Below are positions 3,782 through 52,304 of a stretch of DNA of 64,000 bases, in pieces. Position numbers and translations under genes: made by a program. Numbering within the stretch: position 1 is the stretch's first letter; every line of letters starts with the position of its first letter. The stretch is from assembly GCA_020184695.1 (NCBI GenBank), contig JAANOX010000037.1, forward strand, positions 62,001 through 126,000, in the 5' to 3' direction. This DNA comes from Histomonas meleagridis 2922-C6/04-290x (taxonomy: Eukaryota; Protista; Parabasalia). The notes below the pieces were generated by a model. The model worked only from the letters and a program-made list of their open reading frames with translations. It searched no databases and had not been told where the DNA came from.

Positions 3782-5694
3782 TTGTTTGAAAAGTTTGCCT
3801 GTCATTTTCCGATTGAAAAATTGGAAGTTGCTCGTAAAGCATTACAAAAGAAGAAACAGGAAAAGGAAATACGCAAAATTAAAAGCCTGTTAGTTTCATA
3901 TCAAGAAAGAATAAAAATTTTAGAAAGTGTTGTAAAAAGGATATCACCAAATTCAATGCCACCTAAAGGCAATTCGCAACAAAGGGAATGGTTTTCGGCG
4001 TTTGAGAACATCAATGATGAAAAATTGAGTGATCAGATTGAAATTTCTTTCGGTGAGAAAATTTTATCAGAAATATTCAAGGTTTAATGAGAATGGACGT
4101 AGGTACAGTGATGTTATGCTCAAGCTTTCTTTCATTATTAGATGTCTCGGTCCAAAGTCATATGATTACCTCAGAAATATTTTGGCATTACCTTCAAGGC
4201 AAACATTAGAAAATCACTCTGGTAGTTTTACTAAGGGATGGAGAGATGTGCTGATGGATGTTGAATCAATTAAGATTTTGGTAAATTTATTTCGTAATAT
4301 GAATAACATTCCTAAAAGTCAATTGATTGATTCTGTGATAGGAATAGATGCCATGTCAATTGAGCCTATATTCGATTGTAATGCTGGAACTAATATTGAA
4401 AACAAAAAGCAATCAAACAATGTTTTAATGATGAATTTAATGCCTCTTGATCCACAGTACAAACAATTGCCCATTCATATAATGACAAAAGATAATGGAT
4501 CTGCAGATCTTAATATTAAAAAGAGAATAAACAAAGTCATTGAGAAGCTCAAAGAAGTAGGAGTAAATGTGCTTTATAAAGCAACTGATGGTGACAAAGG
4601 TTATATGGAATGGCATTGGGACTTTCTTAGCAAGTGGTGGCAATTGTATCAAACGGAAGGAATTAATGCAGCAGTTGAATACGTGAGTTCATTATCAGAA
4701 ATTCCAATAGCTGATCCTTTGCATCTTGGAAAAAATATGCGCAGCAGAATTTTAAATAGCTCTGTTTCATTAAGAATAGATGGGAAAAATGCTTTTTCGG
4801 CACCTGACATGGCGCAAATTTTGAATTTTGGAGATGCTCTTACTGACAAATCTTCAATGGGGAAAATGAAGGATTTATATGTTTTCGAGATTTTTGATTT
4901 TCAAATTTTTTTTGAATTGATGAAACAAAGACAATTTAGTATGGCTTTGTATATATTGCCATTTGCAGCTTGGTTTGAAGCGTTAAGAAATCCGAGTTTA
5001 ACTTTTCAAGCAAGAATTAGAGTTTTTAGAGTTTATTTTCCACATTTTTGCTCTGCATCGTAAATGGGTTGAAAATCTTGCACCAGGTGTTACACAAAAT
5101 AAAAAAAAGCAAGGGGTTCAATATTATTGCAGTAAGTCATGTTTGACAAGGATCTTAAACATATTGATAGCGATGATAACTGAAAAAATAAAAAAACCAG
5201 AATCCCTTGCTTTAGATTGTATGCGAACACATTCCCTAGAGTGCTTATTTGGACAAGTTCGCTTGCTTTGCAACTACAAACATACCCTAGGCAGAGTGAT
5301 TAAAAGCATATCAAAAGTATTGATTGTGAAGAGCCTAGTAACAGAGTTGAATCTGCCTCTTAAGATAAGAAATAGGATTAATATAAAAGGTGTGAAAATG
5401 ACTGGTTCAGCGCATGAGAACATCTGAATAAAGAGATCAGATGAATATGTACAATATTTTCTTCAAACATTGTACATATTCATCAATGAAGAAGTTTGTC
5501 CATATTTAAATCAGGGAATTCCTGAACAAAGTTTAATTACGTTCAATGAATATATGAATTGGCTTCATGAAACGTATCGCACATGGGAGCTACATGGGCA
5601 AAGTTTGGAGAAGTGCTACAAGGGAAGCCGTGTTTCCAATTTGACGATTATATCTAGATTAATTAATTTTAAGAGAGAAGATGAATTCATATAA
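3782..5694 (+). mobile_element. P-element/THAP9-like transposase, disrupted
   Basis: Motifs GPKSYDYLRNILALPSRQTL, IGIDAMSI, ATDG, DPLHLGKNMRSR and HSLECLFGQVR. Frameshifts near 4080 and 5045, in-frame TGA at 5425-5427. No TIRs found. Confidence 0.75.
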
Positions 5695-6117
5695 AAAATT
5701 CAAAATTTATTTATTTGTGAATTTAAAAAATATACTTATAGTTTAAGCTATCCACAACAACAAATTTTCTAATTTCATCCAAAAAAAAAGAATCATTCAA
5801 ATAGAGCCTGGCTTTTTCAGTGAAATACGATCACAACCACAGGGGTGGGTTGGAATGTGATTGAATAGTTAACATCGAAATTGAATGATTTTTGTGAATT
5901 TAAAAAATATTAATAAAAACTGAATGCAAAAACAGGTTGAATAGAAAATGAAATGAATGGTTTACCAAAGGGTAGGGAACAAAGTATCGATCATTCAAAA
6001 AATGGAACCCTGCTTCGACTTGGTCAATTTATTGTTAAATCGAATGCATAAAGTCAAGTGCATGCTTAATATAGAAGTCTAACTTAAGGCAGGTTCTAAT
6101 TTATAATTTATAATAAA

Positions 6118-6277
6118 GGAATTGATGTTAATGCAAAAACTATTCATTTTAATAATTTGAAACATGTTTTAATAATTTGAAACAGCACTTCATATAGCAG
6201 TCATAAATAATAATATGGAAATAGTACAATTACTTTTAGATAAAGAAATTAATATCAAAACAATTTTGTCCACTTAA
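6118..6277 (+). pseudogene. Orphan 3' end of a split-ankyrin array (GIDVNAKT, 40-nt spacer, terminal cassette TALHIAVINNNMEIVQLLLDKEINIKTILST*)
   Basis: Manual translation. Spacer 6142-6181. Same subfamily as the 28.9-30.5 kb array. Confidence 0.8.
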
Positions 6278-6559
6278 GGATGATGTTATAAATTAATTTA
6301 TCTGAAAGACGTAATTTTGTTATAAAGTAATAGATTGTATCTTCTACTGCTTCTCGAACTTCAGATGTTATAAGCGCTGGACTTTGTTCATTTGGTGTAT
6401 TAAGTACTAGCCAAAAGATTAATTTATGACTGCATCAGTTTTAAGTTCTTGTTTCTTTTTAAAAACACATGTCCCTCTAAAATTAATAAAAAAATCCGAT
6501 CTTCCTAAATCTTTAGTCTGAACAGGATGCTCCAGTAGAATTGAACTAATTCATTTTGT

Positions 6560-7150
6560 TCTTTTTGCATTGCTTTGTCAAGTAAATCACTAAATAATTG
6601 GATTGATCTAAAAATATTATTTGGAAACATAAATTCATGAAACTAAATATGAATATTATAAATAAGAATTCCTTCTTTGTCAAGTAATAATTTAATTATT
6701 TTTGAATGGCCTTTTTGAGCTCTCATGAGTGCCGTAAAAAATATTCTAAACAAATTCCAAATCTTATATTAAAATATCAAATTATTAAAATAAATTCTGA
6801 ACAAAACAAATAAATATCTTTAGCATTATTCCTTCTTGTTCTAGAAGTAAAAGAAATGTTTCTGTTTTACTTTTTTTTGATGCAAGTATACATACTGTTT
6901 AAAATGATTGAAATAATTTCAAAATGTTTTTTGAAATATGAAACGATTAAGATGAATATAACATAAAATATAAAAAGATTTTTACAATTGACATTAATTT
7001 CTTTGTGCTCACGAATTAATTTAAAGACTTTTGTTTTGCTATATTTAGATGCACTTAGGAATACTGTATTAAATATTTCACAATTATTATATTGAAATAT
7101 AAAATTATTGAAGCAAATTTTATCAATAATTTTTTCTTGAATTCGATATC
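6560..7150 (-). pseudogene. Degenerate split-ankyrin cassette array
   Basis: Minus-strand cassettes start at 7067 (TVFLSASKYSKTKVFKLIREHKEINVNCKN), 6898 (TVCILASKKSKTETFLLLLEQEGI, 7-nt deletion) and 6735 (TALMRAQKGHSKIIKLLLDKEGI). Spacers of 79 and 80 nt match the consensus. Confidence 0.7.
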
Positions 7151-7377
7151 TGCAGGATTCATACCTATGTTTTTTTGTTCAAAAAAAATAATTTTACATA
7201 TGTAGATAGATAATTTTTTTTTGACATTATCATATTTAATACTTAAAACATTTTACATTTTAAAGATACTATCATAATTAAATTTCGATATGGAAATTCA
7301 CATCCTAGAAATTTTCTAATGTCACTTTTGTTATTACACATAAAGGTGCAAAAAGATAAAAATATAACAAATCAAAA

Positions 7378-8562
7378 ATGAATGAAACACTTCAAAATAT
7401 CAAACAAATAATATTTAGTTTAGACAAAGAAAATATTATTCGCTCAATAAACTTAATAATTAACAAATTTGATCATACTCATCCATATTCATTTAATTTA
7501 ATCATTATTCATATGTTATACATTTCATTTATTTTGGAAGTAAAAGATTATGGAATATATATAAAATTCATAATGGAAATTCAAAAATTCGAAGAAAATA
7601 AAAAAATCAAACCAGCATTTAATAAAATTTTGAAGAATTATCTATTATGCAGACAATATGAGCATGAATCTTTTTATCTTCTTGATAAATTGATTGAATG
7701 TAGTTTTATTGAACCATACATTTTCAAAGATATAGCATATTTTATACATCGTTTTCCAAAAAAAGGCTATCAAATCGTAATTTCAGATAAATTTCATAGA
7801 AAAATCGCGGAAAATTATGAAGAATTATCAAAGAATGATTGGGAGCTTCATAAGAAATTAATTGAAGAAGGAGTGAATCCAAATGAAATTGCTAAAATGA
7901 TTCGAAATAATGAAATAGAAAAACTTCAAGAAATATCATCACAACCAAATTTTGATTTTAATCAAACAATAGAACCATCACTTTATGAAAGATGTTCTTT
8001 TATTAGCCAAAGTAATGTTACATTAATTGATTATGCAGCATTTTTTTCTTCTGTTAAATGCTTTAAATATTTACTTATGAATGGTGCAAATGTATATAAT
8101 GCAGGTAAATATGCAGTTGCAGGTGGAAATCTTGAAATTATTCATTTATGTCAACAAAATCATGTATCATTTAAAGATGCATATGAAACTGCAATTCAGT
8201 TTCATAAAAATAATATTTTTAAATATCTTTATGAAAATAAAATTTTAATAGTCAATAGTTCCGAAAAATTAGGTGCTAAATGTATCAAATATTATAACTA
8301 TGAACTTTTTACATTTTTAGAAAAAGAAGGAATGGATGTCACCAATTATATTATTAATAAAACAGCAAAAATTGGGAATTTGTATCTTGTAAAATATTTT
8401 CTTCATAATCATCAAATTCCAAATGATATCATAGTTTCTTCAATAAAATCACAAAATATTGAACTTATAAAATTTCTTTTGATGCAAAAAGGGTTTGATA
8501 TTAATGCTAAAAATATATATTTATTTTATTTATTATTTATTTCAATTTTTTTATATTTCTAA
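7378..8562 (+). CDS. DUF3447-type ankyrin-repeat protein, first coding block of split locus C
   Basis: LIDYAAFFSSVKCFKYL, AVAGGNLEIIHLCQQ and AIQFHKNNIFKYL are typical of the trichomonad DUF3447/ankyrin family. The ORF ends inside the first spacer. Confidence 0.85.
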   Translation: MNETLQNIKQIIFSLDKENIIRSINLIINKFDHTHPYSFNLIIIHMLYISFILEVKDYGIYIKFIMEIQKFEENKKIKPAFNKILKNYLLCRQYEHESFYLLDKLIECSFIEPYIFKDIAYFIHRFPKKGYQIVISDKFHRKIAENYEELSKNDWELHKKLIEEGVNPNEIAKMIRNNEIEKLQEISSQPNFDFNQTIEPSLYERCSFISQSNVTLIDYAAFFSSVKCFKYLLMNGANVYNAGKYAVAGGNLEIIHLCQQNHVSFKDAYETAIQFHKNNIFKYLYENKILIVNSSEKLGAKCIKYYNYELFTFLEKEGMDVTNYIINKTAKIGNLYLVKYFLHNHQIPNDIIVSSIKSQNIELIKFLLMQKGFDINAKNIYLFYLLFISIFLYF

Positions 8563-9500
8563 ATAATATTTGGAAAATATTTAATTTATTTGAAACAGCA
8601 CTTATTTATGCATCTAAAAAAGGTTATACAAAAATAGTTAAATTACTTCTTGAGCAAGAAGGAATTGATATTAATGCAAAAAATATTTATTTGTTTCATA
8701 TATTATTTATTTTAATAATTTGATATTTTAAAATAATATATGGATATTATTTATATAATTTAGAACAGCACTTATAATTGCAACTTTTTATCATCGCATA
8801 AAAATAATTGAAATGCTTCTTAATCAAAAAGAAATCGATTTAAATGTTAAAGATATTTCTTTACTTTATTGATTAAATAATTTGATTATTTGATGTTTAA
8901 AAATAATATTTCAAAATTATTTATATAATATAGGACTGCATTTATGTCTGCAATTCTAGAAGGTGATTGTGAATGTGTGCAATTATTTATCGAAAAAGAA
9001 GGAATTGATATTAATACCTTTGATAATTATTTTACTTATGTGAAATTTAATAAAATAATTTTATGATTTAAAATAATATTTGGAAATTGTTTATATTATT
9101 TAGAACACCACTTATGTTAGCATCTGAAAAAGGTAAAACTGAAATAATAAAATTACTTCTTAAACAAAATGTTATTAACATCAATTCTAAAAATATTTTT
9201 TTGTTTCATGTAATGTGTAATCAAATTGTTTGATGGTTCAAAATAATATATGGAAATTTTTTCAATTATTTAAAACAGCACTTATTATAGCGTCTGAAAA
9301 AGGCTTCCCTGAAATTGTTAAATTACTTCTGTTTCAAAAAGGAATTAATATAAATGTTATAGATATTTATTCATTTAATTCAATATATATTTTAATAATT
9401 TAATATTTCATTCTAATTTTTGGAAATTAATCAAATTATTTAAAACAGCTTATGCATATGCAACTCAAAAACGCAACATTAAAATTTGTTGCATACTATT
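8515..9500 (+). repeat. Split-ankyrin array C: six 80-nt spacers alternating with 90-nt ankyrin cassettes, exact 170-nt period
   Basis: Cassette Thr codons at 8595, 8765, 8935, 9105, 9275 and 9445. The five internal cassettes are stop-free. Confidence 0.95.
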
Positions 9501-9525: not shown

Positions 9526-9810
9526 CTAATGTTTTCTTGTATTTCTCTTTTTGTTGTTATTTTTTTGAGCTTTAGGTGGGTTTTTCTTGGCTTTTTTAGC
9601 TTGTGGAAGTTGTATACTAACACTCATGTTAGTGTCAATTCCACTTTGTTGAAGAAGTAAATTTATTATTTCAGTATTGCCTTTTTCAGTTGTTAAAATG
9701 AATGATGTTTTAAATGTTCCAAACAATTTCCGAATATTATTTTAGAATTTTTGATATTTTCAAATTGAATATTCTTTTTTGTTTTAAAAGTAATTTGAAA
9801 ATTTCAATTT
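9526..9810 (-). pseudogene. Orphan ankyrin cassette remnant, convergent with array C
   Basis: Minus strand: EIFKLLLKQK, a partial spacer ending TAATATTCGGAAATTGTTTGGAACATTTAA, then TSFILTTEKGNTEIINLLLQQSGIDTN (cassette 9619-9708). Confidence 0.65.
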
Positions 9811-10185
9811 TATTACTTCTAATTGCGAGAATAATAAATTCATGAAATATAATTTTGGATCGATTTTTTGAAAAATTTAATTTTTTTCAGTCATTCATAA
9901 TTAATTACATATATTTTATATTATATTGATCTGAAACATAGTAAAAAAGAAAATTAATTCAATTTTTTTTTTCTTCAATTTGTGTAAAAAAATATTATGA
10001 AGAGAAAAAAAGATTTTATTATTGACTTTTCGTTTGATTTCAAACAAAAATAACAAGGCATTTCGAAGTAATAGTAAAGTCGATTATTACCATATGAAGT
10101 CATTAAGAATAATATTAACAATGCTTAAAAAAATCCGAAAAATTAGAAAAAAATTTCATTCTCTAACACGATAAACAAAATTTAT

Positions 10186-17191: not shown

Positions 17192-20100
17192 TCATTTGTT
17201 TAGCTGAAGAGGAACTAAGTGAAGAAGACCTTTGCGAGTAAACACAAATAGGCAGTTCCATTCGTTCGAGTACGCAATGTACTCAACGTTTGAGCAAGAA
17301 GAGAAACTGATGTTTGACATTTCGAGGTAAAATGCCTCACAAATAAAAAGATTTGATTGATCATCGACAATTGCAATGTAATCAAATCCGTTGAAGCTTC
17401 TCCATGTACACCAATAAGAGATGTCAAAGGTAATTTGCTTTGATTTTATGATTTTTCCAGATGGACTAATAACAATTAATTTTGATCGAGTGTGAACAAC
17501 AGTGAAACCCCATGACTCTGTAATGAGTATCTTAATGGGCGTTTCTGAGATGTTGAGAATGAAGTGAAGATTCGATTTAAAATCAAATGATTGAATATAT
17601 CCTTCAACTGTACCACATGAAACAGTTTGAAAACGCTGACTTATTGCAAATGATGATACAGTATCATTAGTTATTAGAACTTTTCCTTTAAGTTTACTCG
17701 AACAAAAATCGAAAATTGAAATGTTTCCAATTTCATTTAAAATGCCAACCAATCGTCCCGAAAATTGAATGTTTTTAATTGTACCAAATTTGAATGACAA
17801 CTCCTTTGAAATCCTATCGGTTATTATTATCAAATTCTTATCGTCAAACAGCCCAAAACCGTTTTGTATAGTTCTCAAATTTGTGTTGTTCAATACGGTT
17901 TTTACGGTTATTTGATTTTTTTGTAAATTTTGTTTTTTATTCGAAACATCAATTTTTAAATCACAAAATGCATAATTTGATTTCATTGCAAGGAAAGTTA
18001 CTGTAGAATTTTCTAAGGTAATGTATGCTAAGCTAATAATCTCTTTATCGATATTTATAATTTGATTTGAATTAATTATTAAATTTTTGTTTTTGCTCTT
18101 TTTCGGATGTTTCGAAGTAAATATTTGCGTTGGCATTTGTCCGCATTTTTGGAGATTCTTTTTTATAGTTTCATTTGATATATCGAAATCATTCCAAACT
18201 GAATCGAACAAATTTTTGGAATATTTACTTTTAATGTTATTAACTCCGAACATTAAATCGATCCAATGATTTAAATTATCGGATATTTCATCAGATTCCA
18301 AAACTTTTCTGTTGAAATATACAAATTCATCCGAAGTCATTCTTCGATTTTTAATGTTTGGCAATTGCACATTATCGAAGAAATCCGAAGCGAAGAAGAA
18401 TTCCGGCGTTAGTTCATATGAATTATTATCTTTTATAGATTCTTTAAATGCATCTTCAATTGATTCCATTTTATTTCTATAGCCAAGTAAATCATAAGGA
18501 TAAATATGTGACAAATAATATGATATTATATATGGATTTGAAGGTCCATTTCTAAATTCACAATTAAAATTTAAATTAATAGGTTTCGTTAAATCACGTA
18601 TTGTATTATTCTCATAATCAGTTATCACCCATGGAAATATTGGATATAATGAACAATCATGAAATGTTCTTCCAGCAAATTGATTTAAAAACATAATGTA
18701 TTCAAAATTTGATAAACGGCCGCTTTGCCACTTTTGCGTAATTCCTGTTGATTCAATGTAACTTGAAAAAGTTTCTGTTTGAATTGGAATAGTCGTAAAC
18801 TTTTGAATTGCATGTACAACTTTGTTAATTTCTTTTTGATCAAAATCAATTAAAAAAGAATTACCTGTCGTCAGACAAAATTCAAAAGAATTAAATAAAT
18901 GAAATCGGTTTTTCTTGTAAACATTTGTAACTTCATTAAAATCGATAATTTTATGAAAATCAGAAGAAATTAAATGAATTGATTTATTATCAATCGAAAA
19001 TATAATATTCTTTGTGTTAGAAATTCGAACTTTTTTACATTTTATCGAAAACAAATGTTTATCATAATCGATCTTCATATTCAGATTCGAATTTTGTGGT
19101 ACACGAGAAGACATTTTATAAAATGGCTGAACAAAACCTGAACAATATTTAAATATTTTATGTTTTCTCTGTAAATTATTGTTATATTTCCACGGAGTTG
19201 TTTCATTCATTTGCTTTTGTATTAAATGATGAAACTTTCGATAATTTTGTAAATTGTTTTGAACATTTTCAATTTCTTCAAATTTAACATTTGTTTCATC
19301 GAAGAATATATTATTATTAAATCTTTTGATCAGTAAATCCCTAAAGTCTAATAATCGATAAGATAAATATTCGATATTATTTAAATATTTTGGAATTGCA
19401 TTTAATAAAAATTCATTAATTTCAATTGTCTTATTTTTAGTTGTTAAATATATTAAAATTTTTTGTAATTTTTCTATTTGTTTATCGTTAATTTCGCTAT
19501 TTAATAACATATTTATATAATTCGTGTCAATTAATTCTCCTTTTTGATTAGTTAATAATGAAAATGAATAACTTTGTATCATTTCATTATCTTTTATTAT
19601 ATTATATAAATCAGAAAAAAGTTTTATTTTAATTTTCGAATTATTTTTTATAATATTCGTTTTAAAAGGTGATTTTTCTATTAAAAATTTTAGTGATTTA
19701 GAAATATTTTCATTTATTAAATGTAATACTATAAATTTAAAACATCTCTTAAACATATTAATGTCATTTTTTTCTTCATAATATAAAAACAAAATTTTTT
19801 TGCCAATTTTTTCTACATTTGGAAAACCTAATGACGTTAACAGATCAACGATAGATATAAACTTATCAATTACAGTATAATTGAATGCTTTATCCATAAC
19901 GTTTTTTATAAATTTAATTACTAAATCGAAATAATCCTTTTTAAGATTAGTAATTAATATCAAAGGCCAAATTGACCAAATTTGATTTGTAACGCTTAAA
20001 TTTTTAGGTATATTTAATTCACTTAAAATTTTTGCGATTTCAATTTCTTTATTTAAATTTAATGCAATTAATATACACAAAGGATATATCAATTGATAAT

Positions 20101-23100
20101 TATAAACAATTTTAATACATTTATTCCATAATTTTATTGTAAAAAAATCTTCATTTAATAACGTTAATATTTTTTCCAAATGTAAATAAAAGTTTTTAAT
20201 ATCAATTTGATGAATTATTTTTAATGTAATTATAAAACGTTTTTCTTGTTTCGATTTAATTTGTTGATATAATAACTTACATAACATTGATTTATTATAT
20301 TTTATATTGTTAATAATTTCAAGTAGAAAACTTAGAAATGAATTAACACCTTTAATATCATTACAAGTTGTACATAATGACATTAAATAAATTAAATTTT
20401 CTTTGGTAAAACTTTGATTAATCAAAGCTTTTAATATATTATATAAATATTTTCTACAATTTTTTATATTTATATTTTTAGTACGTAATCTATTTGATGT
20501 ATTAAATCCTTTAATTATATCAACTTCGATAGGATCAAACCAAAGATATATTCGAATTAATGAAATAATTTCATTAAATTTCGGTAAATAACTTAAATAT
20601 AAAATATATAAATTAGTTCCCCAATCTTTGATAATTGATTCGAATGAATTCGATGTATACCATAAATCGAAGTTAAATAATATGTTATTAATTAAAGACT
20701 TACAAAACATTTCATTATTACTTGATGATAAAATCGAATAAAACTTTAAATATATTTGATATGTTAAGTTTTGTATATTATTTTCTATTAATATATATGA
20801 AATTAATGAAAAATATTTATAAATGTATTGATAAGAATTAGAAAAACATATTATGTAATATAAAAAGTCTAAAAATGTTTCATGAAAATTTTTCGGATAT
20901 TTATCAAAGTATATAAAAAATGGGATTAATAATTTCATTATCTTTTTCATGGAGAATATATCAAAGATATTTGAACGTAATGGATAACATTTGATTTGTT
21001 CCATTGTAATTTTTCCATTATTATTATTATGAACATCATATAATATTTCATCATTATTATATATCTTTAAGTAATTAACTTCGGAATAAAAATTACTTTG
21101 ATTATGTAAAGAGCCAAAAATTATTAATAAATTTTCGTTTTCTTTTTCATATGGATAAAAATCTATTGGAAATGTCGATGGATCTCCTTCATCATGACTT
21201 GTTTCAATTTTTATATATATTTCATTATTCATATTTTTTTTAATAGAAAATTTTAATGTTACGACATCAGAAGGGAAATTTTCATATAAAAATGTTTGTA
21301 ATATTTTTTGTACGAATTTAGTTTCTAATACAATTGATTTACCTTGTGAACATAAGTAAAAACCATTACATTTATTATTATATATTCCGAATATTATCGA
21401 TTTTGTATTAGTTATTTCTGAATGAATTTTTATATCGAATTTAAATGTTATACCTTTTTCTAATTGTAATATATTTATATTCTTTAAAGTTATTTCTTTA
21501 TTCCCTAATAATATAATTTTATAATATAATTTGGAGAAATTTATCAAAAAATTATTTAATATTTCAAACCAAAAATTTATTTCTTTTGTTGATATGACTT
21601 TAATTATATTTGAAATTATTTGTGGATCTGTTAAATATTGAGAAATCAAAACAATGTTTGGAATTACAATGTTTTTTATTACATTTTCATCAATTTTTAA
21701 ACTAAATTCATATCCATGAAATTTAAATGTATTATTATTATAATTTAATATAAGTTTTAATAAAAATAAGTCATATTCACCTTGATGACATTGAATACAA
21801 TTAAAAATCGAATAATTACATGATTTGTAAAACATTTTCAAATATTTTTTAGTGTTATTTTTATCGTTAATTATACTAAAAAATAATAATATTAAATTCG
21901 GTATCTTAATTAAAAACATTTGTTTCAAATATATTCGATTACGAGAAATAATATATAACAAATTATTAATTGTTTGTTCATTTGTATCAATGTTTTTAAT
22001 TGTTAAATATAAATTTAATGTTTGTGTTTTAGTTATATTAAAATTTTGATTATTTATTGATAAATTTTTAAAGAAATTTAAAGTTTTATCAAAAAATTCT
22101 TTAGAATTATATTTATTATTGGTTTGAATAATTGAAGGAATTAATTTTATACATTTTTCAGATAATTTCGGATTATAACATAATGAAATATTAATACATT
22201 TTAATAATTTTAATGGTAATTTATGATATTTCATATTAATTATTTTATGAATAAAATTAATTAACTTTTTTACCTTTGTTTCAGATTTATTTTGTAAATA
22301 TTTCTGTATATATGATATGATTTTATCTTCTAACGAAGGTTCAAATATTCTCAATAAAAAACATTTTAAAAATTCAAATGAACAAAAACATTCTTCAATT
22401 AATGTTTGATCTTCTAATAAAGTAAATAAATATATTAATATTATACTTTTAGCATTTTGAATTATTTGTTGTGAATTTTGAGTTTTTTTATAAAATAAAT
22501 CAAGAATAGTTAAAACATAATTTATGGAATTTAATGTCTTATCATTAATTAAAACATTTTTACCAAAGAAATTAAGTTTAATGGTGATATAACCAATGAT
22601 TTCAGAAAACAAAAATGGATTCTGTTTGTACTTTTGTAATAATCTATTCAAAAAGTTCGAGTTTTCAGTAATTATTATATCAATCGAATTTATCCGTAAA
22701 AAACGAATTATTTCGAAGTTTTCACATTTATTATATAATGTAATCTTATAGTTAAATATATTTTCAGATATTAAAATCTTAAAAATCGATTTATTATTAA
22801 TTTTATAGTTTAATTTCATTAAAAAATATTGGAAAATTAGATATAAAAATATGTTTTTTTCATTATTTTCATCTATAAAAACATTTAAGAAACCATCAAA
22901 AAATGAATTTATATATTCAGATAACGATTTCATTAATAAATTGGAAATGTTTTCAATTGATCCAATTTCATCCTCAATGAATTCAAATGTTAAATTCGTG
23001 TCAAACTCCGAATCGTTTAAAGGATTTAAACCATTTGGAAGTGTATCTTCTTCTTCAATTTTAAATATTATTTCAAATGATTCTTCTATCAAATTATTTT

Positions 23101-23902
23101 CTGAAATTTCAGAATTAACATTATTTGGATTAAATGAATATTTATTAATCAGTTTATCATTAAAACAAATACGTGATGATAATATTAATGGAATATTCGT
23201 ATAGAATATTGATAAAGATTGATCATATTTAATGGCGGACAATTCGGAAATCAATTGTATTGCATTGGTTTCAAATTTACAGCCTTTATTCGATATAACA
23301 TTGAAGATTTTAAGAAAATCGTATTGTTTATTTATATTTGATTGTTGAAAGATGAGTATAAAAAATTTAATGGTTATGTTATACGCTTTTGTTTGATCGT
23401 GAATGATCGAATTTTGAAGAATTTCAACCATATCATCAAATATTTTTGGAATTAAATCAGTTGGAAAACTTGAACTAAAAGAAAGATATTGAAGAGTAAG
23501 CTCCCTGATAAGAAATATGTATATAATATGAGGAATATTAGACTTAAATTTTAATATTGAATTTATTAGTAATGGATAATATTCTAAAATTGAAGTGACA
23601 TCTTTTGTGGATATCCATGCAATAGAATTCATGTAAGTTAAGAGTACTTCATCTTTAGTTGTTAAACCATATTGGTATAATGAAGAATTTAATTTAAATT
23701 TATTTGATATAGGCTGAAGCACTTGAGCAACCGATGCATTTCTTTCGATTTCAGTGTTTAATTTTTCAAAAAAACTTTCATTAACATCCGGAAATTTAAA
23801 ATATGATGAAACAGTATCAGATTTTTTGTGCTTAATTTGGATTTCTTGGCCCTTGAACTGAGAAAGGATAACCAAAAGAGGATCTTTTTTATCTTTCCTC
23901 AT
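17192..23902 (-). CDS. Beige/BEACH domain protein with PH-like and WD40-like C-terminus
   Basis: KWQSGRLSNFEYIMFLNQFAGRTF...YPIFPWV, ELTPEFF, HWIDLMFG, GQMPTQIF..HP; 2236 aa. Confidence 0.9.
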   Translation of the reverse strand: MRKDKKDPLLVILSQFKGQEIQIKHKKSDTVSSYFKFPDVNESFFEKLNTEIERNASVAQVLQPISNKFKLNSSLYQYGLTTKDEVLLTYMNSIAWISTKDVTSILEYYPLLINSILKFKSNIPHIIYIFLIRELTLQYLSFSSSFPTDLIPKIFDDMVEILQNSIIHDQTKAYNITIKFFILIFQQSNINKQYDFLKIFNVISNKGCKFETNAIQLISELSAIKYDQSLSIFYTNIPLILSSRICFNDKLINKYSFNPNNVNSEISENNLIEESFEIIFKIEEEDTLPNGLNPLNDSEFDTNLTFEFIEDEIGSIENISNLLMKSLSEYINSFFDGFLNVFIDENNEKNIFLYLIFQYFLMKLNYKINNKSIFKILISENIFNYKITLYNKCENFEIIRFLRINSIDIIITENSNFLNRLLQKYKQNPFLFSEIIGYITIKLNFFGKNVLINDKTLNSINYVLTILDLFYKKTQNSQQIIQNAKSIILIYLFTLLEDQTLIEECFCSFEFLKCFLLRIFEPSLEDKIISYIQKYLQNKSETKVKKLINFIHKIINMKYHKLPLKLLKCINISLCYNPKLSEKCIKLIPSIIQTNNKYNSKEFFDKTLNFFKNLSINNQNFNITKTQTLNLYLTIKNIDTNEQTINNLLYIISRNRIYLKQMFLIKIPNLILLFFSIINDKNNTKKYLKMFYKSCNYSIFNCIQCHQGEYDLFLLKLILNYNNNTFKFHGYEFSLKIDENVIKNIVIPNIVLISQYLTDPQIISNIIKVISTKEINFWFEILNNFLINFSKLYYKIILLGNKEITLKNINILQLEKGITFKFDIKIHSEITNTKSIIFGIYNNKCNGFYLCSQGKSIVLETKFVQKILQTFLYENFPSDVVTLKFSIKKNMNNEIYIKIETSHDEGDPSTFPIDFYPYEKENENLLIIFGSLHNQSNFYSEVNYLKIYNNDEILYDVHNNNNGKITMEQIKCYPLRSNIFDIFSMKKIMKLLIPFFIYFDKYPKNFHETFLDFLYYIICFSNSYQYIYKYFSLISYILIENNIQNLTYQIYLKFYSILSSSNNEMFCKSLINNILFNFDLWYTSNSFESIIKDWGTNLYILYLSYLPKFNEIISLIRIYLWFDPIEVDIIKGFNTSNRLRTKNINIKNCRKYLYNILKALINQSFTKENLIYLMSLCTTCNDIKGVNSFLSFLLEIINNIKYNKSMLCKLLYQQIKSKQEKRFIITLKIIHQIDIKNFYLHLEKILTLLNEDFFTIKLWNKCIKIVYNYQLIYPLCILIALNLNKEIEIAKILSELNIPKNLSVTNQIWSIWPLILITNLKKDYFDLVIKFIKNVMDKAFNYTVIDKFISIVDLLTSLGFPNVEKIGKKILFLYYEEKNDINMFKRCFKFIVLHLINENISKSLKFLIEKSPFKTNIIKNNSKIKIKLFSDLYNIIKDNEMIQSYSFSLLTNQKGELIDTNYINMLLNSEINDKQIEKLQKILIYLTTKNKTIEINEFLLNAIPKYLNNIEYLSYRLLDFRDLLIKRFNNNIFFDETNVKFEEIENVQNNLQNYRKFHHLIQKQMNETTPWKYNNNLQRKHKIFKYCSGFVQPFYKMSSRVPQNSNLNMKIDYDKHLFSIKCKKVRISNTKNIIFSIDNKSIHLISSDFHKIIDFNEVTNVYKKNRFHLFNSFEFCLTTGNSFLIDFDQKEINKVVHAIQKFTTIPIQTETFSSYIESTGITQKWQSGRLSNFEYIMFLNQFAGRTFHDCSLYPIFPWVITDYENNTIRDLTKPINLNFNCEFRNGPSNPYIISYYLSHIYPYDLLGYRNKMESIEDAFKESIKDNNSYELTPEFFFASDFFDNVQLPNIKNRRMTSDEFVYFNRKVLESDEISDNLNHWIDLMFGVNNIKSKYSKNLFDSVWNDFDISNETIKKNLQKCGQMPTQIFTSKHPKKSKNKNLIINSNQIINIDKEIISLAYITLENSTVTFLAMKSNYAFCDLKIDVSNKKQNLQKNQITVKTVLNNTNLRTIQNGFGLFDDKNLIIITDRISKELSFKFGTIKNIQFSGRLVGILNEIGNISIFDFCSSKLKGKVLITNDTVSSFAISQRFQTVSCGTVEGYIQSFDFKSNLHFILNISETPIKILITESWGFTVVHTRSKLIVISPSGKIIKSKQITFDISYWCTWRSFNGFDYIAIVDDQSNLFICEAFYLEMSNISFSSCSNVEYIAYSNEWNCLFVFTRKGLLHLVPLQLNK

Positions 23903-28639: not shown

Positions 28640-28950
28640 AAGTATTTATAAATTGCATTTGGAATTTCTTCAAATGAGAAGTTTTGTCACTATTATGGGC
28701 ATCTTCAAATGGTCATACAGAAATAGTTAAATTACTTCTTGAACAAGAAAGAATCGATATTAATGCTAAAGATATTTAACTATTTTATTTTGTATTTATT
28801 TAAATAATTTGAATTTCCAATTTTTTTCCGAAAATTATTTATTTGATTTCAAACAGCACTTATGAATGTAACTTGGATCAACAATATATAAATAATAAAC
28901 TACTTTCGACTCGTAAAGATTTCAAAGATGATAATTTTATTGTTCATTTA
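28640..28950 (+). pseudogene. Orphan split-ankyrin remnant, convergent with array F
   Basis: Cassette 28684-28773 (LSLLWASSNGHTEIVKLLLEQERIDINAKD), 79-nt spacer, then a degenerate TALMNVTW cassette. Confidence 0.75.
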
Positions 28951-30473
28951 AGTAAATAACTTGTTTTAATATTAATTTCTTTATCAAAAAGTAATTTTAC
29001 TATTTCTATATTATTATTTTTAACTGCTATATGAAGTGCTGTTTCAAATTATTAATACATATTCCAAATTATTAAAACATATTCTAAATTATTAAAACAT
29101 ACATCAAATTATTAAAACATATTCTAAATTATTAAAACATATTACAAATTATTAAAACATACATCAAATTATTAAAACATATTCTAAATTATTCAAATGA
29201 ATAGTTTTTGCATTAACATCAATTCCTTCTTTCTCTAAAAGTAATTTTTACTATTTCTATATTATTATTTCTAACTGCTATATGAAGTGCTGTTTCAAAT
29301 TATTAAAACATATTAAAAATTATTAAAACATATTCTAAATTATTAAAACATATCCAAAATTATTAAAACATATTTCAAATTATTAAAACATATTCTAAAT
29401 TATTAAAACATATTTCAAATTATTAAAACATATTTCAAATTATTCAAATGAATAGTTTTTGCATTAACATCAATTCCTTCTTTCTCTAAAAGTAATTTTA
29501 CTATTTCTATATTATTATTTCTAACTGCTATATGAAGTGCTGTTTCAAATTATTAAAACATATTAAAAATTATTAAAACATATTCTAAATTATTAAAACA
29601 TATTACAAATTATTAAAACATACATCAAATTATTAAAACATATTCTAAATTATTAAAACATATTAAAAATTATTAAAACATATTTCAAATTATTAAAACA
29701 TATTTCAAATTATTAAAACATACATCAAATTATTAAAACATATTCTAAATTATTCAAATTAATAGTTTTTGCATTAACATCAATTCCTTCTTTCTCTAAA
29801 AGTAATTTTACTATTTCTATATTATTATTTCTAACTGCTATATGAAGTGCTGTTTCAAATTATTAAAACATATTAAAAATTATTAAAACATATTCTAAAT
29901 TATTAAAACATATTACAAATTATTAAAACATACATCAAATTATTAAAACATATTCTAAATTATTAAAACATATTTCAAATTATTAAAACATACATCAAAT
30001 TATTAAAACATATTCTAAATTATTAAAACATATTACAAATTATTAAAACATACATCAAATTATTAAAACATATTCTAAATTATTCAAATGAATAGTTTTT
30101 GCATTAACATCAATTCCTTCTTTCTCTAAAAGTAATTTTACTATTTCTATATTATTATTTCTAACTGCTATATGAAGTGCTGTTTCAAATTATTAAAACA
30201 TATTAAAAATTATTAAAACATATTCTAAATTATTAAAACATATCCAAAATTATTAAAACATATTTCAAATTATTAAAACATATTCTAAATTATTAAAACA
30301 TATTACAAATTATTAAAATGAATATATTTTGCATTAACATCAATTCCTTCTTTCTCTAAAAGTAATTTTACTATTTTTATATTATTATTTTTAACTGCTA
30401 TATGAAGTGCTGTTTCAAATTATTAATACATATTCCAAATTATTAAAACATATTCTAAATTATTCAAATGAAT
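28944..30473 (-). repeat. Split-ankyrin array F: near-identical cassettes separated by expanded 20-nt minisatellite spacers
   Basis: Spacers of 60, 140, 240, 220, 160 and 160 nt built from AATAATTT(AGA/GGA/GTA/GAT/GAA/TTA)..ATGTTTT 20-mers. Cassettes read TALHIAV(K/R)NNNIEIVKLLLEKEGIDVNAKT; the last ends with TGA at 28944-28946. Confidence 0.95.
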
Positions 30474-31583
30474 AGTTTTTGCGTTAATATCAATTCCTTT
30501 ATCTAAAAGTAATTTTACTATTTCAATATTTCCTGATTCAACCGAGCGCAATAAAATTGTATTTGGAATTTGTTGATTTTCTATGATACTATCCATTAGA
30601 AATGTATTTCCATTTCTTGCAATTTCCTCTATAATATCTTCAGTTATTTCCTTTGTTTCTTGTTCTAAAAATGAAAAAATTATATAATTATTATAATTCA
30701 GACATATTTTTTTAAAATATGCAATGTCTTTTTCAGATTTACCATGATTTATATTAGGTGATTGTTTATTGGATTTTGTTATAACTTCTCCTTTTTTCTT
30801 TTCATAAAGATATTTAAAGATATCATTTTTATGAAATTCAATTGCTGTTTCATATGCATCTTCAAATGATGAATGATTCTGTTCACATAAATGAATTATC
30901 TCTAAACTTCCACCTGCAACTGCATATTTACCTGCGTTATCTATTTTAGAACCATTCATAAGTAAATATTTAAAACATTTAACAGAAGAAAAAAATGCTG
31001 CATAATCAATTAATTTAACATTTTCTTGATTAATAAATGAACATCTTTCATAAATTGATGGCTCAATGATTTGATTAAAGTCAAAATTTGGTTGTGATGA
31101 TATTTCTTGAAGTTTTTCTATTTCATCATTTCGAATTATTTTTGCTATTTCATTCGGATTATGCCCTTCTTCATTAAAATTCTTCAGGTTAGCAAAATCA
31201 TTATTTAGAACCAATTCACAATTTTTCTTATTGTATTTTGCAGGATCTGTTTCGAATAATCCTTGTTCGTCCATCTTTCGAAGAAGGAAAAATGATTCTT
31301 GTGTTGTTGTTTGCAGTAAGTATAGATTAAATATATGAACTAGGTTTGTTGTATTTTTATTAGTTTTTTCTTCTTCTAAATTTAACATCAATAAGTATTT
31401 AAAAATTGGGAATTTGACGTTTAATTGAGAAGCAAATGCTGTATATATGAACCCAGAAATAAGAAGATTGAATGTGTATTGTCTATTGTAAGTAAATAAT
31501 TCTATTGTTGATTGAACTGATGATTCGATATTTTCTTCGTTGAGATTAAAGATGATTGACTGCAACGATTTAGAGAGCTCCAT
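30423..31583 (-). CDS. DUF3447-type ankyrin-repeat protein, first coding block of split locus F
   Basis: Same family motifs as 7378..8562; ends at TAA TAA inside the first 60-nt spacer. Confidence 0.85.
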   Translation of the reverse strand: MELSKSLQSIIFNLNEENIESSVQSTIELFTYNRQYTFNLLISGFIYTAFASQLNVKFPIFKYLLMLNLEEEKTNKNTTNLVHIFNLYLLQTTTQESFFLLRKMDEQGLFETDPAKYNKKNCELVLNNDFANLKNFNEEGHNPNEIAKIIRNDEIEKLQEISSQPNFDFNQIIEPSIYERCSFINQENVKLIDYAAFFSSVKCFKYLLMNGSKIDNAGKYAVAGGSLEIIHLCEQNHSSFEDAYETAIEFHKNDIFKYLYEKKKGEVITKSNKQSPNINHGKSEKDIAYFKKICLNYNNYIIFSFLEQETKEITEDIIEEIARNGNTFLMDSIIENQQIPNTILLRSVESGNIEIVKLLLDKGIDINAKTIHLNNLEYVLIIWNMY

Positions 31584-31964: not shown

Positions 31965-32037
31965 GCTTCTGTAGCCCAGTGGTTAGAGCGTTCGCCTAGT
32001 AAGCGGAAGATCGCGAGTTCGACTCTCGCCAGAAGCA
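31965..32037 (+). tRNA. tRNA-Thr (anticodon AGT), intronless
   Basis: Acceptor stem GCTTCTG/CAGAAGC, D arm with TGG, anticodon arm TTCGC-CTAGTAA-GCGGA, T arm GCGAG-TTCGACT-CTCGC; followed by a T-run (Pol III terminator). Confidence 0.96.
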
Positions 32038-49145: not shown

Positions 49146-49451
49146 TTATTGTAGAATTTAAATAAAAACAAAGCGTTAAATAAATTTTTATTAAATTTTG
49201 TTATCAGGGAGATACCTAAAACTAATAAAGTGATAATGCATTTAGAAGATTGTGAGATTTGTTCGGAATTGTTCTGGCAAACTCGAATTTAAATCATAAT
49301 TGAATAAATTTATACGATGTATACACATGAAGTGTATTTCTACCAAATTTATCTTTTCTTATTCCTAATGATGTGTGAAATGACCATTTATGTATTCAAA
49401 ACCATAAACGTGCGCCTTTTATTTGGAAGAAAAAAAATTCTATCGAACCAC

Positions 49452-50717
49452 ATGAATACACTTACCACACTCCAAAATTTAATATTCGATTTAACCGAGG
49501 AAAGTCTTGAGTCTTCCACTCAACAAATAATAAAATTATTTGACGTAAATTACCCCTATTCATTTAATTTTGTTTTAAGCAGGTTAATTTATAGTGCATT
49601 TTGTTCACACGTAAAAAAATGTGATGATAATGTATATATAAATTTTATTGAATTAATGCAACAAAAGGAAAAAGAAATTATTAAAAATAATTTTCAAATA
49701 ATTGAAATTTGTTGTAATGTTTTAATCAAATTTAATTCTCAAGAATCATATTATTTTATAGAAAAAATTATTGAGAAGAATTTAGTTGATACCAGCATTA
49801 CAAGAAATATTAATAGTTTATATTTTTCACATTATAAAACAGATAAAGAAAACCAAAAAATTATTCATAAAATTACTCAAAAATATAATAGTTTTAATTT
49901 GGTTCAAAAATACTTTTTGGATAATTATGAAAAATTATCAAAGAATGATTTTAAACTTCATAAGCAATTAATTAAAGAAGGAGTTAATCCAAATGAAATT
50001 GCTAAGATAATTCGAAATGATGAAATAGAAAAACTTCAAGAAATATCATCACAAACAAATTTTGATTTTAATCAAACAATTGAACCATCACTTTATGAAA
50101 GATGTTCATTTATTAATGAAGAAAATGTTACATTAATTGATTATGCAGCATTTTTTTCTTCTGTTAAATGTTTTAAATATTTACTTATGAATAATACAAA
50201 TGTAGTTAATACAGGCAAATATGCAATTGCAGGTGGAAATGAAGAAATTATTCATTTATGTGAACAAAATCATTCAACATTTAAAGATGCATATGAAGCA
50301 GCAATAGAATTTCATCGAAATGATATCTTTAAATATCTTTATGAAAACAATATAGAAGAAATTGATAATAAAAAAATCAATTACCTAAGGATAATATGCA
50401 TAGAATATAACAATTATGAACTCTTAACATTTTTAGACAAATGGGATACATGTATTTCTAATTATGTTATCAACAATGCTGCAAAGACAGGTAATTTAAT
50501 GCTTGTTAATTTTTATCTTCAAAATAATCAAATTCTCAATGATATTTTGGTAATCTCCTCGAAATCTGGAAATAGAGAACTTGTTAAGTATTTTCTCGAA
50601 CAAGGAATTGATGTTAATAGTAAAGATTTTTATTTGTTTTATTTGATATTTCTTTTAATAATTTTTAATTTCAAAATAACATTTGGAAATCATTTTGAAT
50701 ATTTTATACATCACTAA
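49452..50717 (+). CDS. DUF3447-type ankyrin-repeat protein, first coding block of split locus H
   Basis: Family motifs as above; likely start MNTLTTLQN at 49452 (ORF track starts 49317); runs through the first spacer and stops out of frame in cassette 1. Confidence 0.85.
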   Translation: MNTLTTLQNLIFDLTEESLESSTQQIIKLFDVNYPYSFNFVLSRLIYSAFCSHVKKCDDNVYINFIELMQQKEKEIIKNNFQIIEICCNVLIKFNSQESYYFIEKIIEKNLVDTSITRNINSLYFSHYKTDKENQKIIHKITQKYNSFNLVQKYFLDNYEKLSKNDFKLHKQLIKEGVNPNEIAKIIRNDEIEKLQEISSQTNFDFNQTIEPSLYERCSFINEENVTLIDYAAFFSSVKCFKYLLMNNTNVVNTGKYAIAGGNEEIIHLCEQNHSTFKDAYEAAIEFHRNDIFKYLYENNIEEIDNKKINYLRIICIEYNNYELLTFLDKWDTCISNYVINNAAKTGNLMLVNFYLQNNQILNDILVISSKSGNRELVKYFLEQGIDVNSKDFYLFYLIFLLIIFNFKITFGNHFEYFIHH

Positions 50718-52304
50718 ATTTAGCATCTAAAGAAGATGATTCAGACATAGTTAAATTACTTCTTGAACAAAAAGGAATTGATATTAATGCTAAAGATATT
50801 TGTTTGTTTAATTTGATATTTATTTTAATATTTTGATATTTCAAAATGATACTTGGAAATTATTTAAATTATTTGAAACAGCACTTATGATTGCATCTAT
50901 CGAAGGTGATAAAGAAATAGTTAAATTACTCCTGAAACATAAAGGAATTGATGTCAATGCCAAAGATATTTATTTATTTTATTAGCTATTTTCTTAAATA
51001 ATTTTTTATTTTAAATTAATATTTGGAAATTCTTTAAATTGTTCTTAACAGCTCTTAGTATTGCAACCACAAGAGGATACACAGAAATAGTTAAATTGCT
51101 TCTTGAGCTAGATGGAATTGATGTTAATACTAAAGATATTTAATTATTTTATTTGATATTTATTTTTATAATTTGATTTTTCATAATATAACATGGAATA
51201 TATTTAAATTATTTGATACAGCACTCTTTTTTGCATATATACATAAAAATATAATAATATTCAAAATGCTTCTTAAACAAAAAGGGATTGATATTAATGT
51301 TATATATATTTGTTTCGATAATTTTCACTCTCAAAATTGTATTTCGTAATTATTTAAACTATTTTTCACAATACTTATGGATGCATCAGAAAAAGGTAAC
51401 ATAGAAATTGTTAAATTACTTCTTAAACAAGAAGGGATTGATATCAATTTTAAAAATGTTTATTTGTTTTATTCGATATTTATTTTAATAATTTTTTATT
51501 TGAAAATAAAATAAGGAAATTATTTAAATTCTTTGATTCAGCACTTATTTTGGCAACTCAAAATAGTCATGTAAAAATAGTTAAATTGCTTCTTGAGAAA
51601 GAAGGAATTAATATAAATATCAAAGATTTCTATCTGTCTAATATATAAATTATTGTAATAATTTAATATTATAATATAATATTTGGAAACTATTTCAAAC
51701 ATTTGAAACAGCACTTATTATTGCATCTTTCGATGGGAATACTGAAATAGTTAAATTACTTCTTGAAAAAGAAGGAATAGATGTTAATTTTAAAACTATT
51801 TATTTGTTTTGTTTGATGTTTGTTGGATGAATATAATATTCCAAAATCATATTTGGAAATTATTCAAAATATTTTGTACACCACTTAATATTGTATCAGC
51901 AAATGGAATTATAGAAGTCGTTAAATTGCTTATTGAACATGAAGAAATTAATGTTAATGCTACAGATATTTATTTATATTATTTGATATTTATTTTAATA
52001 ATTTGATATTTCAAAATAATATTTGGAAATTATTTGAGATATTTAGAACAGCACTTATTTTAGCATCTTTAAATGGTCATATAGAAATAGTTAAATTACT
52101 TCTTGAACATGAAGGAATTGATATTACTGCTAAAGATATTAATGCGTTTTAATTAAAATTTATTTACAAAATTTGATATTACAAAATAATATTTGGTAAC
52201 AGCATAATACATTTAATACAGCACTTATTTATGCAACACAAAAAGGTTTCACAGAAATTATTAAATTAATTCATTTAAAAAAAAAAAAAATTAATGAATG
52301 CTAA
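50628..52304 (+). repeat. Split-ankyrin array H: ten spacers (nine of 80 nt, one of 60 nt) and ten cassettes
   Basis: Cassette first codons at 50708, 50878, 51048, 51218, 51368, 51538, 51708, 51878, 52048 and 52218. A further decayed unit lies near 52400. Confidence 0.95.

Follow-up and report, generated by a model that had tools for sequence, protein, structure and literature searches.

The 3' ends of a family of ankyrin-repeat genes in Histomonas meleagridis are divided into single-repeat coding cassettes by A/T-rich spacers built from 20-nucleotide (nt) modules, and we consider it probable that these spacers are intron-like elements of a non-canonical kind that interrupt a series of ankyrin exons produced by tandem duplication. 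The stretch analysed is 64,000 nt of DNA from this poultry parasite (strain 2922-C6/04-290x, assembly GCA_020184695.1, contig JAANOX010000037.1, positions 62,001 to 126,000 of the forward strand), hereafter the window. An array of 170-nt units (W1) forms the 3' part of a DUF3447/ankyrin gene that begins at position 7378. The original prediction, made from the sequence of this array, was that six units keep exactly 170-nt spacing and that the length of the spacer itself is under selection.

Anatomy of the arrays

In the W1 array, Tandem Repeats Finder (TRF) detected a period of 170 at 8470-9472, with 5.9 copies, 67% matches and 1% indels. Each unit consists of a 90-nt ankyrin cassette with a spacer of exactly 80 nt ahead of it; spacers start at 8515 + 170k, and cassettes start with Thr codons at 8595, 8765, 8935, 9105, 9275 and 9445, in exact 170-nt steps. 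The coordinates of cassettes and spacers and the TRF result confirm the predicted spacing of six units, and the cassette peptides quoted with that prediction are correct. The sixth unit holds for the spacing but not as a complete repeat, as the cassette at 9445 is truncated. The parts of the gene, all on the + strand, are as follows.

7378..8514: 5' coding block with N-terminal region, DUF3447 and ankyrin repeats, ending in ...GFDINAKN (open reading frame (ORF) list, Pfam DUF3447/Ank, translation)
8515..8594: spacer 1, 80 nt, four 20-nt modules, 94% A+T, no GT anywhere
8595..8684: cassette 1, TALIYASKKGYTKIVKLLLEQEGIDINAKN, Pfam Ank positions 4-32, 32.9 bits
8685..8764: spacer 2, 80 nt, stops at position 36 in the upstream frame and at position 71 in the downstream frame
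8765..8854: cassette 2, TALIIATFYHRIKIIEMLLNQKEIDLNVKD (Pfam Ank search)
8855..8934: spacer 3, 80 nt
8935..9024: cassette 3, TAFMSAILEGDCECVQLFIEKEGIDINTFD (Pfam Ank search)
9025..9104: spacer 4, 80 nt
9105..9194: cassette 4, TPLMLASEKGKTEIIKLLLKQNVININSKN (Pfam Ank search)
9195..9274: spacer 5, 80 nt
9275..9364: cassette 5, TALIIASEKGFPEIVKLLLFQKGININVID (Pfam Ank search)
9365..9444: spacer 6, 80 nt
9445..9486: last cassette, TAYAYATQKRNIKI..., truncated after ~14 codons

The mechanically called ORF stops at a TAA at 8560-8562, 46 nt into spacer 1. Past the last cassette, the frame continues antisense through an inverted orphan fragment, and a hairpin-forming GCAACA, 8 nt, TGTTGC is present at 9473-9492, at the junction of the truncated cassette and this fragment.

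The W1 spacers are 82-94% A+T (0.82-0.94) and 66-78% identical in ungapped comparison (mean 72%), as compared to 59% for the W1 cassettes. The claim that A/T-rich spacers had diverged with no net indel is thus correct, but the constraint is not on length alone: the sequence of the spacers is conserved too, and more so than that of the cassettes.

Two sister genes in the window, W2 and W3, have the same layout, and the 5' blocks match Pfam DUF3447, Ank and Ank_2.

49317..50627, + strand: W2 5' coding block, DUF3447 and ankyrin (Pfam, ORF list)
50628..52304, + strand: W2 array, ten spacers (nine of 80 nt; 60 nt at 51308-51367) and ten cassettes
30474..31583, - strand: W3 5' coding block, DUF3447 and ankyrin (Pfam, ORF list)
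28944..30473, - strand: W3 array, near-identical cassettes, spacers of 60, 140, 240, 220, 160 and 160 nt

One W3 cassette (29203-29293, - strand) is 91 nt long, with one additional A in a run of A (GTAAAAATTAC as compared to GTAAAATTAC in its sisters); the frameshift is either genuine or due to a homopolymer error in the Nanopore reads. The window ORFs 7378-8562, 49317-50717 and 30423-31583 have no exact match in the protein collection, and a similarity search with the first of them found no match above 59% identity. Because they are absent from that collection, the three window genes seem to be unannotated or differently modelled in the deposited genome.

Besides the three window genes, the layout was found in four further H. 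meleagridis arrays (L004a and L004b on one locus, L006 and L007), which we reached via paralogues annotated 'caskin', and in metagenome contigs of related organisms (L002, L003 and L008), where the N-terminal regions are only ~45-50% identical. In L004:6001-9614 (WSYJ01000186.1), a 'caskin' model of 506 amino acids (aa) ends in ...DINAQNI and the next called gene, of 505 aa, starts with M-F-K-TALMWAS.... Only three cassettes and four 80-nt spacers lie between them, and the two are probably one gene annotated as two.

Spacer modules and spacer length

We found that the spacer module has the consensus ATTTRTTTTAATAATTT followed by NNN (20 nt), and that an 80-nt spacer is four such modules. Over 218 modules from 44 spacers, all in strict register, the consensus is ATTTATTTTAATAATTTGAA; positions 15-17 are TTT in 89-98% of modules, and positions 18-20 are variable, with 40-55% agreement. 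In the common 80-nt form the four modules are differentiated, and the third carries a conserved AATATTTGGAA. The second form, from which the W3 spacers are built, consists of near-identical 20-mers ATATGTTTTAATAATTTRRA in variable number. When spacers were compared with each other at different shifts, identity was 0.67 at zero shift, 0.37-0.43 at 1-10 nt and 0.53 at 20 and 40 nt; the difference between the zero-shift and the shifted values indicates that low complexity does not account for the register. A MAFFT alignment of 21 spacers from W1 and other loci, 12-nt flanks included, needed no gap, and spacers from different species are 0.58 identical as compared to 0.35 in the shifted control.

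Spacer lengths were collected for a sample of 52 spacers that covers the H. meleagridis arrays and four related contigs and is not genome-wide, with cassette boundaries set by a position matrix and by eye.

W1: 80 nt, six times
W2: 80 nt, nine times; 60 nt
W3: 60, 140, 240, 220, 160, 160 nt
L004a: 280, 180, 140, 100, 63 nt
L004b: 80 nt, four times
L006: 57, 82, 46, 80 nt
L007: 17 or 23 nt; 80 nt, seven times; 81 nt; 60 nt
L002: 80 nt
L003: 80 nt
L008: 83 nt; 80 nt, three times
L030 (a more distant relative): 20 nt

In these arrays with a 5' coding block, 45 of the 52 spacers are exact multiples of 20 nt (20 to 280); five are off by a multiple of three, and a deviation of 1-2 nt is seen in only two. 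Spacer lengths are thus discrete and do not form a continuum. The cases of plus or minus 3 nt may be codon indels at cassette edges, because the boundaries follow the codon alignment. Given the 45 spacers at multiples of 20, the 170-nt period is the modal four-module case and not the product of a fixed 80-nt ruler. Sister arrays have spacers of 20, 60, 100, 140, 160, 180, 220, 240 and 280 nt, and the unit is the 20-nt module in strict register. The proposal that spacer length is under selection therefore stands in that small indels are strongly under-represented, but neither 80 nor 170 nt is itself the constrained length. Nucleosome phasing was dropped as an explanation for 170 bp, since the periods of the sister arrays range from 150 to 370 nt.

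Three observations argue for lengths that are kept by selection rather than by youth: the 80-nt form is conserved across species in sequence and length, the modules of L004a have diverged (62-85% alike) yet still hold the register, and orphan fragments that lack a 5' coding block decay. Four such fragments are present in the window.

6117..6290, + strand: end of a cassette, 40-nt spacer (two modules), terminal cassette
6640..7160, - strand: three decayed cassettes, one 79-nt spacer, one 7-nt cassette deletion
9530..9900, - strand: degenerate cassette, shortened spacer of ~46 nt, terminal cassette with Lys-rich tail and stop
28640..28890, + strand: one cassette, 79-nt spacer (28774-28852), short terminal piece TALMNVTWINNI and stop

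All four sit in intergenic gaps, and they are the only source of 79-nt spacers. Their decay, seen in the 79-nt spacers, the ~46-nt spacer and the 7-nt cassette deletion, lets them serve as relaxed-constraint controls. An ordinary intron that is recognised by signals at its ends would tolerate internal indels of 1-2 nt, and the near-absence of such indels (2/52) suggests that the element is recognised as a whole or excised module by module. Concerted evolution could contribute in young arrays of the W3 type; it fails to account for the position-specific modules of the 80-nt form.

Coding cassettes, untranslatable spacers and rival explanations

The cassettes are coding, or were until very recently. 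Among 27 non-redundant cassettes, in-frame stops are present in only two, both terminal, and the other two frames contain stops in all 27. In a neutral simulation, in which the consensus was randomly mutated to the observed divergence of each cassette, a mean of 17.1 of 27 cassettes carried a stop and the minimum in 1000 runs was 9. Differences between cassettes fall on the three codon positions as 231/133/223, with the second position changed least. Cassette length is constant at 90 nt, and variation is concentrated at the usual ankyrin surface positions while T-A/P-L, G, EIVKLLL and GIDIN are kept. Single cassettes match positions 4-32 of the 33 positions of Pfam Ank (PF00023), several of them above the curated gathering cut-off; when five W1 cassettes were tested, four matched at E values of 7e-8 to 2e-3, three of these above the 21.1-bit cut-off, and cassette 3 was weak at only 5.3e-3. 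Neutral decay of the embedded coding sequence, which in a pseudogene or satellite would show as stops, frameshifts and equal rates at the codon positions, was found only in the orphans and not in the intact arrays.

The arrays also end as genes end. In W2, W3, L004a, L006, L007 and L008, the array closes with a divergent, more polar cap cassette that has its own stop and is followed by no modules; the cap cassettes end in ...KLIHLKKKKINEC (W2, cassette at 52218), ...INIKTSYLLK (W3), ...SKLKVSKNV, ...AEIIKKKRK, ...VELLESKK and ...GIKPYFHQPNY. In L004b, the fourth cassette runs on uninterrupted as the Ser/Thr/Pro-rich 505-aa ORF that is listed as a separate gene. When the cassettes are counted, the proteins reach 550-620 aa and ~8-9 repeats, the same as uninterrupted homologues in Tritrichomonas foetus and other parabasalids.

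The spacers, in contrast to the cassettes, cannot be translated. The upstream frame hits a stop within all but one spacer, and in the downstream frame there is often a stop three or four codons ahead of the cassette. One frameshift would be enough to bridge only 11 of the 21 spacers of 80 nt and practically none of those that are longer, and spacers with a length that is a multiple of three (60, 180 and 240 nt) still contain in-frame stops. Since the spacers are untranslatable and the cassettes are kept coding, we infer that the spacers must leave the transcript.

The in-frame stops leave room for no more than 3 nt of exon at the 5' side of a spacer and 6 nt at its 3' side; codon 2 is TAA in three spacers. 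Positions 33 and 1-3 of the ankyrin profile, three to four residues, are missing from the cassette in the Pfam match, and retention of 3 + 6 nt (I, then F-x) fits both the missing residues and a 33-residue period. In the homologue P0004, the junction is uninterrupted and reads NSKN-VMFE-SAL, and its 12 nt look like six bases from either end of a spacer. For the cut sites, nucleotide conservation favours the module edges, with only the variable NNN retained, whereas the 33-residue period favours 3 + 6 nt retained.

We therefore read the 170-nt period, with the reservation that goes with probable removal, as what would be the repeat unit of a tandemly duplicated, one-ankyrin-repeat-per-exon region at the 3' end of the gene. 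Most likely, a tiny intron would first have been multiplied in 20-nt steps, and the exon-plus-spacer unit would then have been tandemly duplicated along the gene. The module resembles an A/T-only version of a tiny trichomonad intron (about 23-25 nt), with a 5' RTWTRT, a U-run, a branch-like UUAAU core and a fixed short tail, and excision would leave at most 3 nt (5') and 6 nt (3') as linker codons. The constancy of the period would follow from the four-module spacer being a functional element under conservation, the length of which changes almost only by whole modules or codons.

A more specific version of this proposal, which we regard as unlikely although worth stating, is that removal counts in 20-nt steps, either because the modules act as self-contained mini-introns without GT-AG that are excised recursively and abut one another, or because a non-spliceosomal or highly derived machinery measures length. 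Counting in 20-nt steps with a leftover that is a multiple of three would produce lengths of 20n or 20n plus or minus 3k, make 1-2-nt indels rare and tolerate anything from one to fourteen modules. It would then represent a new class of intervening sequence in nuclear genes of Histomonas and relatives, perhaps including Tritrichomonas.

Short inserts at the same place in the repeat are found in more distant relatives. Metagenome contig k141_436249 (L030:5145-5165) has a single 20-nt T-rich insert at the same ankyrin loop, and removing exactly 20 nt gives ...IKGNTPLIEAV..., a canonical ...K-G-N-T-P-L... junction, followed by contiguous ankyrin repeats. In T. foetus, a 25-nt T-rich insert (L005:4760-4790, MLAK01000672.1) lies just ahead of the T-A/P-L of a late ankyrin repeat, and T-rich inserts of 44 and 63 nt (L031:4120-4170 and 4360-4425, MLAK01000594.1) lie just ahead of the T-A/P-L of late repeats as well. 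The annotated T. foetus proteins stop within these inserts, one of which starts with GTTTTAATTTTTAATTTTTGAA, similar to the Histomonas module. A GT...AG span is visible in L005, L030 and L031 and is out of frame by one base in each (21 nt in L030).

Several observations weigh against the interpretation of the spacers as intron-like. The boundary dinucleotides are not GT-AG: over 33 spacers, AT comes first in 27 and GT in 2, and TT stands three bases ahead of the cassette in 31. Introns in Trichomonas are reported to be GT/AG without exception and to number no more than one or two in a gene (PMC12316389), and the H. meleagridis genome annotation has a maximum of one intron per gene (PMC8529796). 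No spliced version was found in the protein collection, where the P0014, P0019 and P0028 clusters have a single genomic member each, and the deposited models P0014 and P0019 end within the first spacer. If the one-module spacer of L007 were an intron, it would be no longer than 20 nt, which is at the lower bound of known intron sizes. Spacers of 81 and 82 nt occur in apparently intact genes, so the length rule is not absolute; both deviations are in T-runs and could be assembly errors, homopolymer errors being possible in a Nanopore and Illumina assembly.

Known splice signals were searched for with little success. No in-frame GT...AG or AT...AC boundary pair exists at any offset tabulated over the 33 spacers, and the 12-nt ACTAA/TCTAA branch/3' motif of the Trichomonas type is not in the spacers, which have only a TTAAT-like core at a fixed distance from the module end. 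Scans of the window and the loci with whole-intron patterns and the 3' motif gave nothing convincing, with no bona fide H. meleagridis intron for comparison. The signature of a U12-type AT-AC intron (5' site /ATATCCTT, branch site TCCTTAAC, AC/ end) is not present, and U12 splicing was rejected because the AC after the spacer is the Thr codon and the AT...AC span breaks the frame; U12 introns are also reported to be absent in Trichomonas (PMC12316389). RNAalifold found 0 conserved pairs on 21 sequences, single-sequence z-scores ranged from -0.8 to +0.9, and an Rfam scan of the window found only a tRNA; a structured RNA, snoRNA or ribozyme was rejected on these negative results. In Joint Genome Institute (JGI) metagenomes, a protein-profile scan found no relatives, and a DNA pattern scan gave 20 chance matches without cassettes. 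We found no description of 20-nt modular spacers in the Histomonas, Dientamoeba and parabasalid intron literature, including the genome papers.

The same boundary and annotation data bear on a different explanation, in which the protein ends at the stop in the first spacer and the downstream units are dead relics, that is, non-expressed duplicates of the last repeat and 3' flank that have been homogenised by unequal crossing-over or gene conversion. The deposited models do stop in the first spacer, four homologues end exactly in ...KDI and a stop, and the spacers lack GT-AG; moreover, the orphan fragments prove that units get copied and decay, and the near-identical W3 cassettes were recently homogenised. 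However, relics would not be stop-free far beyond the neutral expectation, nor show a deficit of second-position changes and ankyrin-specific conservation. The cap cassettes have their own stops, the 505-aa ORF is continuous with a cassette, and the position-specific identities of the modules are kept across species, which homogenisation among modules would erase. We judge this explanation to be distinctly improbable.

Recoding would instead have the ribosome pass the spacers by programmed -1 frameshifting or by bypassing (hopping), as is known from phage T4 gene 60 and from the mitochondrial byps of Magnusiomyces. It would explain the intolerance of 1-2-nt indels, an 80-nt length leaves a remainder of 2 on division by three, some units have a downstream frame that is open across the entire spacer, and the 11 bridgeable spacers of 21 compare to 5.6 expected from shuffles. 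But 10 of the 21 80-nt spacers and all long ones are unbridgeable by one shift, the 60-, 180- and 240-nt spacers are in frame yet carry stops, and we found no conserved slippery site, matching take-off and landing codons or RNA structure. Up to 10 events per mRNA would be needed, and recoding is thus very unlikely.

We give equally little credence to a silent cassette store, in which unexpressed donors replace the last expressed repeat by segmental gene conversion and the spacers provide the homology for recombination, as in vls or msp2-type systems. An expressed 5' block followed by diverse cassettes between conserved repeats, with diversity concentrated at the ankyrin surface positions, resembles such a store. 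No signal peptide or surface-protein features were seen, however, the terminal caps and the 505-aa continuation fit exons and not donors, and T. foetus homologues carry the same repeats contiguously in one ORF.

Least credible of all is that the spacers are ordinary GT-AG spliceosomal introns that merely look odd, or an assembly artefact: a few spacers begin with GT (W2_6, L4a_2 and L008_1) and more distant relatives have GT...AG-bounded T-rich inserts, but spacer 1 has no GT at all, a GT start is found in only 2/33, the GT...AG spans of the relatives break the frame, and independent Illumina metagenome contigs carry the same 80-nt spacers.

Known systems and genomic setting

The closest parallel to the favoured reading, that of intron-like spacers between ankyrin exons, is the 'type B' intron of Trichomonas vaginalis and T. 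stableri, which is 23-28 nt long with a 5' GT-W-Y-NNN-TT, a poly-T run and a TCTAA at a fixed distance of a few bases from the AG (PMC12316389). Like the spacers, type B introns are found in Parabasalia, are short, U-rich and tight in length, and also occur in genes for ankyrin and other repeat proteins (PMC12316389). The layout of the module is similar as well, with a 5' xTWYNNNTT, a U-run and a YTAAY-like core at a fixed short distance from the 3' end, as though every G or C of a type B intron had been replaced (ATTTRTTT, then TTAAT, then five more bases). In contrast, type B introns are GT/AG, their ACTAA/TCTAA branch site is joined directly to the 3' site, and a gene has one of them or, rarely, two, whereas the Histomonas elements have AT...TT and a TTAAT core, consist of 1 to 14 modules of 20 nt, occur up to 10 times in a gene and are putative introns.

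Tiny introns with tightly constrained lengths are known from other protists: fixed-length introns of about 15-16 nt are found in Stentor, of about 25 nt in Paramecium and of 18-21 nt in the Bigelowiella nucleomorph. These resemble the spacers in being A/T-rich and constrained in length with few internal signals; unlike the spacers, they are GT-AG, occur as single units rather than in tandem multiples, and show no sequence conservation from one site to the next. The contrast with ordinary introns drawn in the original prediction is misleading: the evidence points to intervening sequences that are intron-like, though very unusual.

In animal ANK genes, 99-bp ankyrin-repeat exons arose from tandem exon duplication. 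The Histomonas arrays share with them one repeat per coding block, a break at the same point (the hairpin loop) and growth by duplication of exon plus intron; ANK introns, unlike the spacers, are long, variable, unconserved and GT-AG. Introners of Micromonas and fungi are likewise families of sequence-related intervening sequences, and the non-conventional introns of euglenids share ends without GT-AG. However, introners transpose to unrelated genes and keep GT-AG, whereas the Histomonas elements are confined to one gene family and one repeat position, and euglenid introns need end-to-end base pairing, whereas no structure was found in the spacers. The internal eliminated sequences of Paramecium are also A/T-rich elements in coding sequence that are excised and have discrete, periodic lengths, but they are removed from DNA in the somatic nucleus, are TA-bounded and have a 10-bp period. 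We know of nothing like them in parabasalids.

The prevailing view of parabasalid genomes is that introns are almost absent, strictly GT/AG and limited to one per gene. If excision occurs, the genes of an entire family in H. meleagridis and related organisms would each contain 4 to 10 intervening sequences whose boundaries follow different rules. Gene models in present use would then be truncated ('caskin' proteins that stop within the first spacer), divided into two (L004) or absent altogether (the three window genes), and caution would be needed with ORF-based annotation of trichomonad genomes, including those of the pathogens T. foetus and possibly T. vaginalis. The 20-nt quantisation would in that case be a natural experiment for studying how the length of very small introns is determined.

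The published H. meleagridis genome is a Nanopore and Illumina assembly of 43 Mb with 28% GC (PMC8529796). The ORFs of the window include actin, Hsp70, an ADA2-type adaptor and AAA ATPases, which identifies the stretch as eukaryotic DNA. The actin has an exact match on contig WSYJ01000081.1 of assembly GCA_020186115.1, listed in a comparative table as H. meleagridis 2922-C6/04-10x (PMC13735942). Further features of the window are as follows.

31965-32037, + strand: tRNA-Thr (AGT), directly upstream of the start region of the W3 gene, the sole Rfam/ARAGORN match in the window
24456-24745, - strand: 21-nt repeat (13.5 copies, 84% matches) in the Hsp70-family ORF 24198-26630, corresponding to a seven-residue protein repeat close to the C-terminus
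17192-23902, - strand: ORF of 2236 aa, where the A/T content of the window is highest (17-23% GC)

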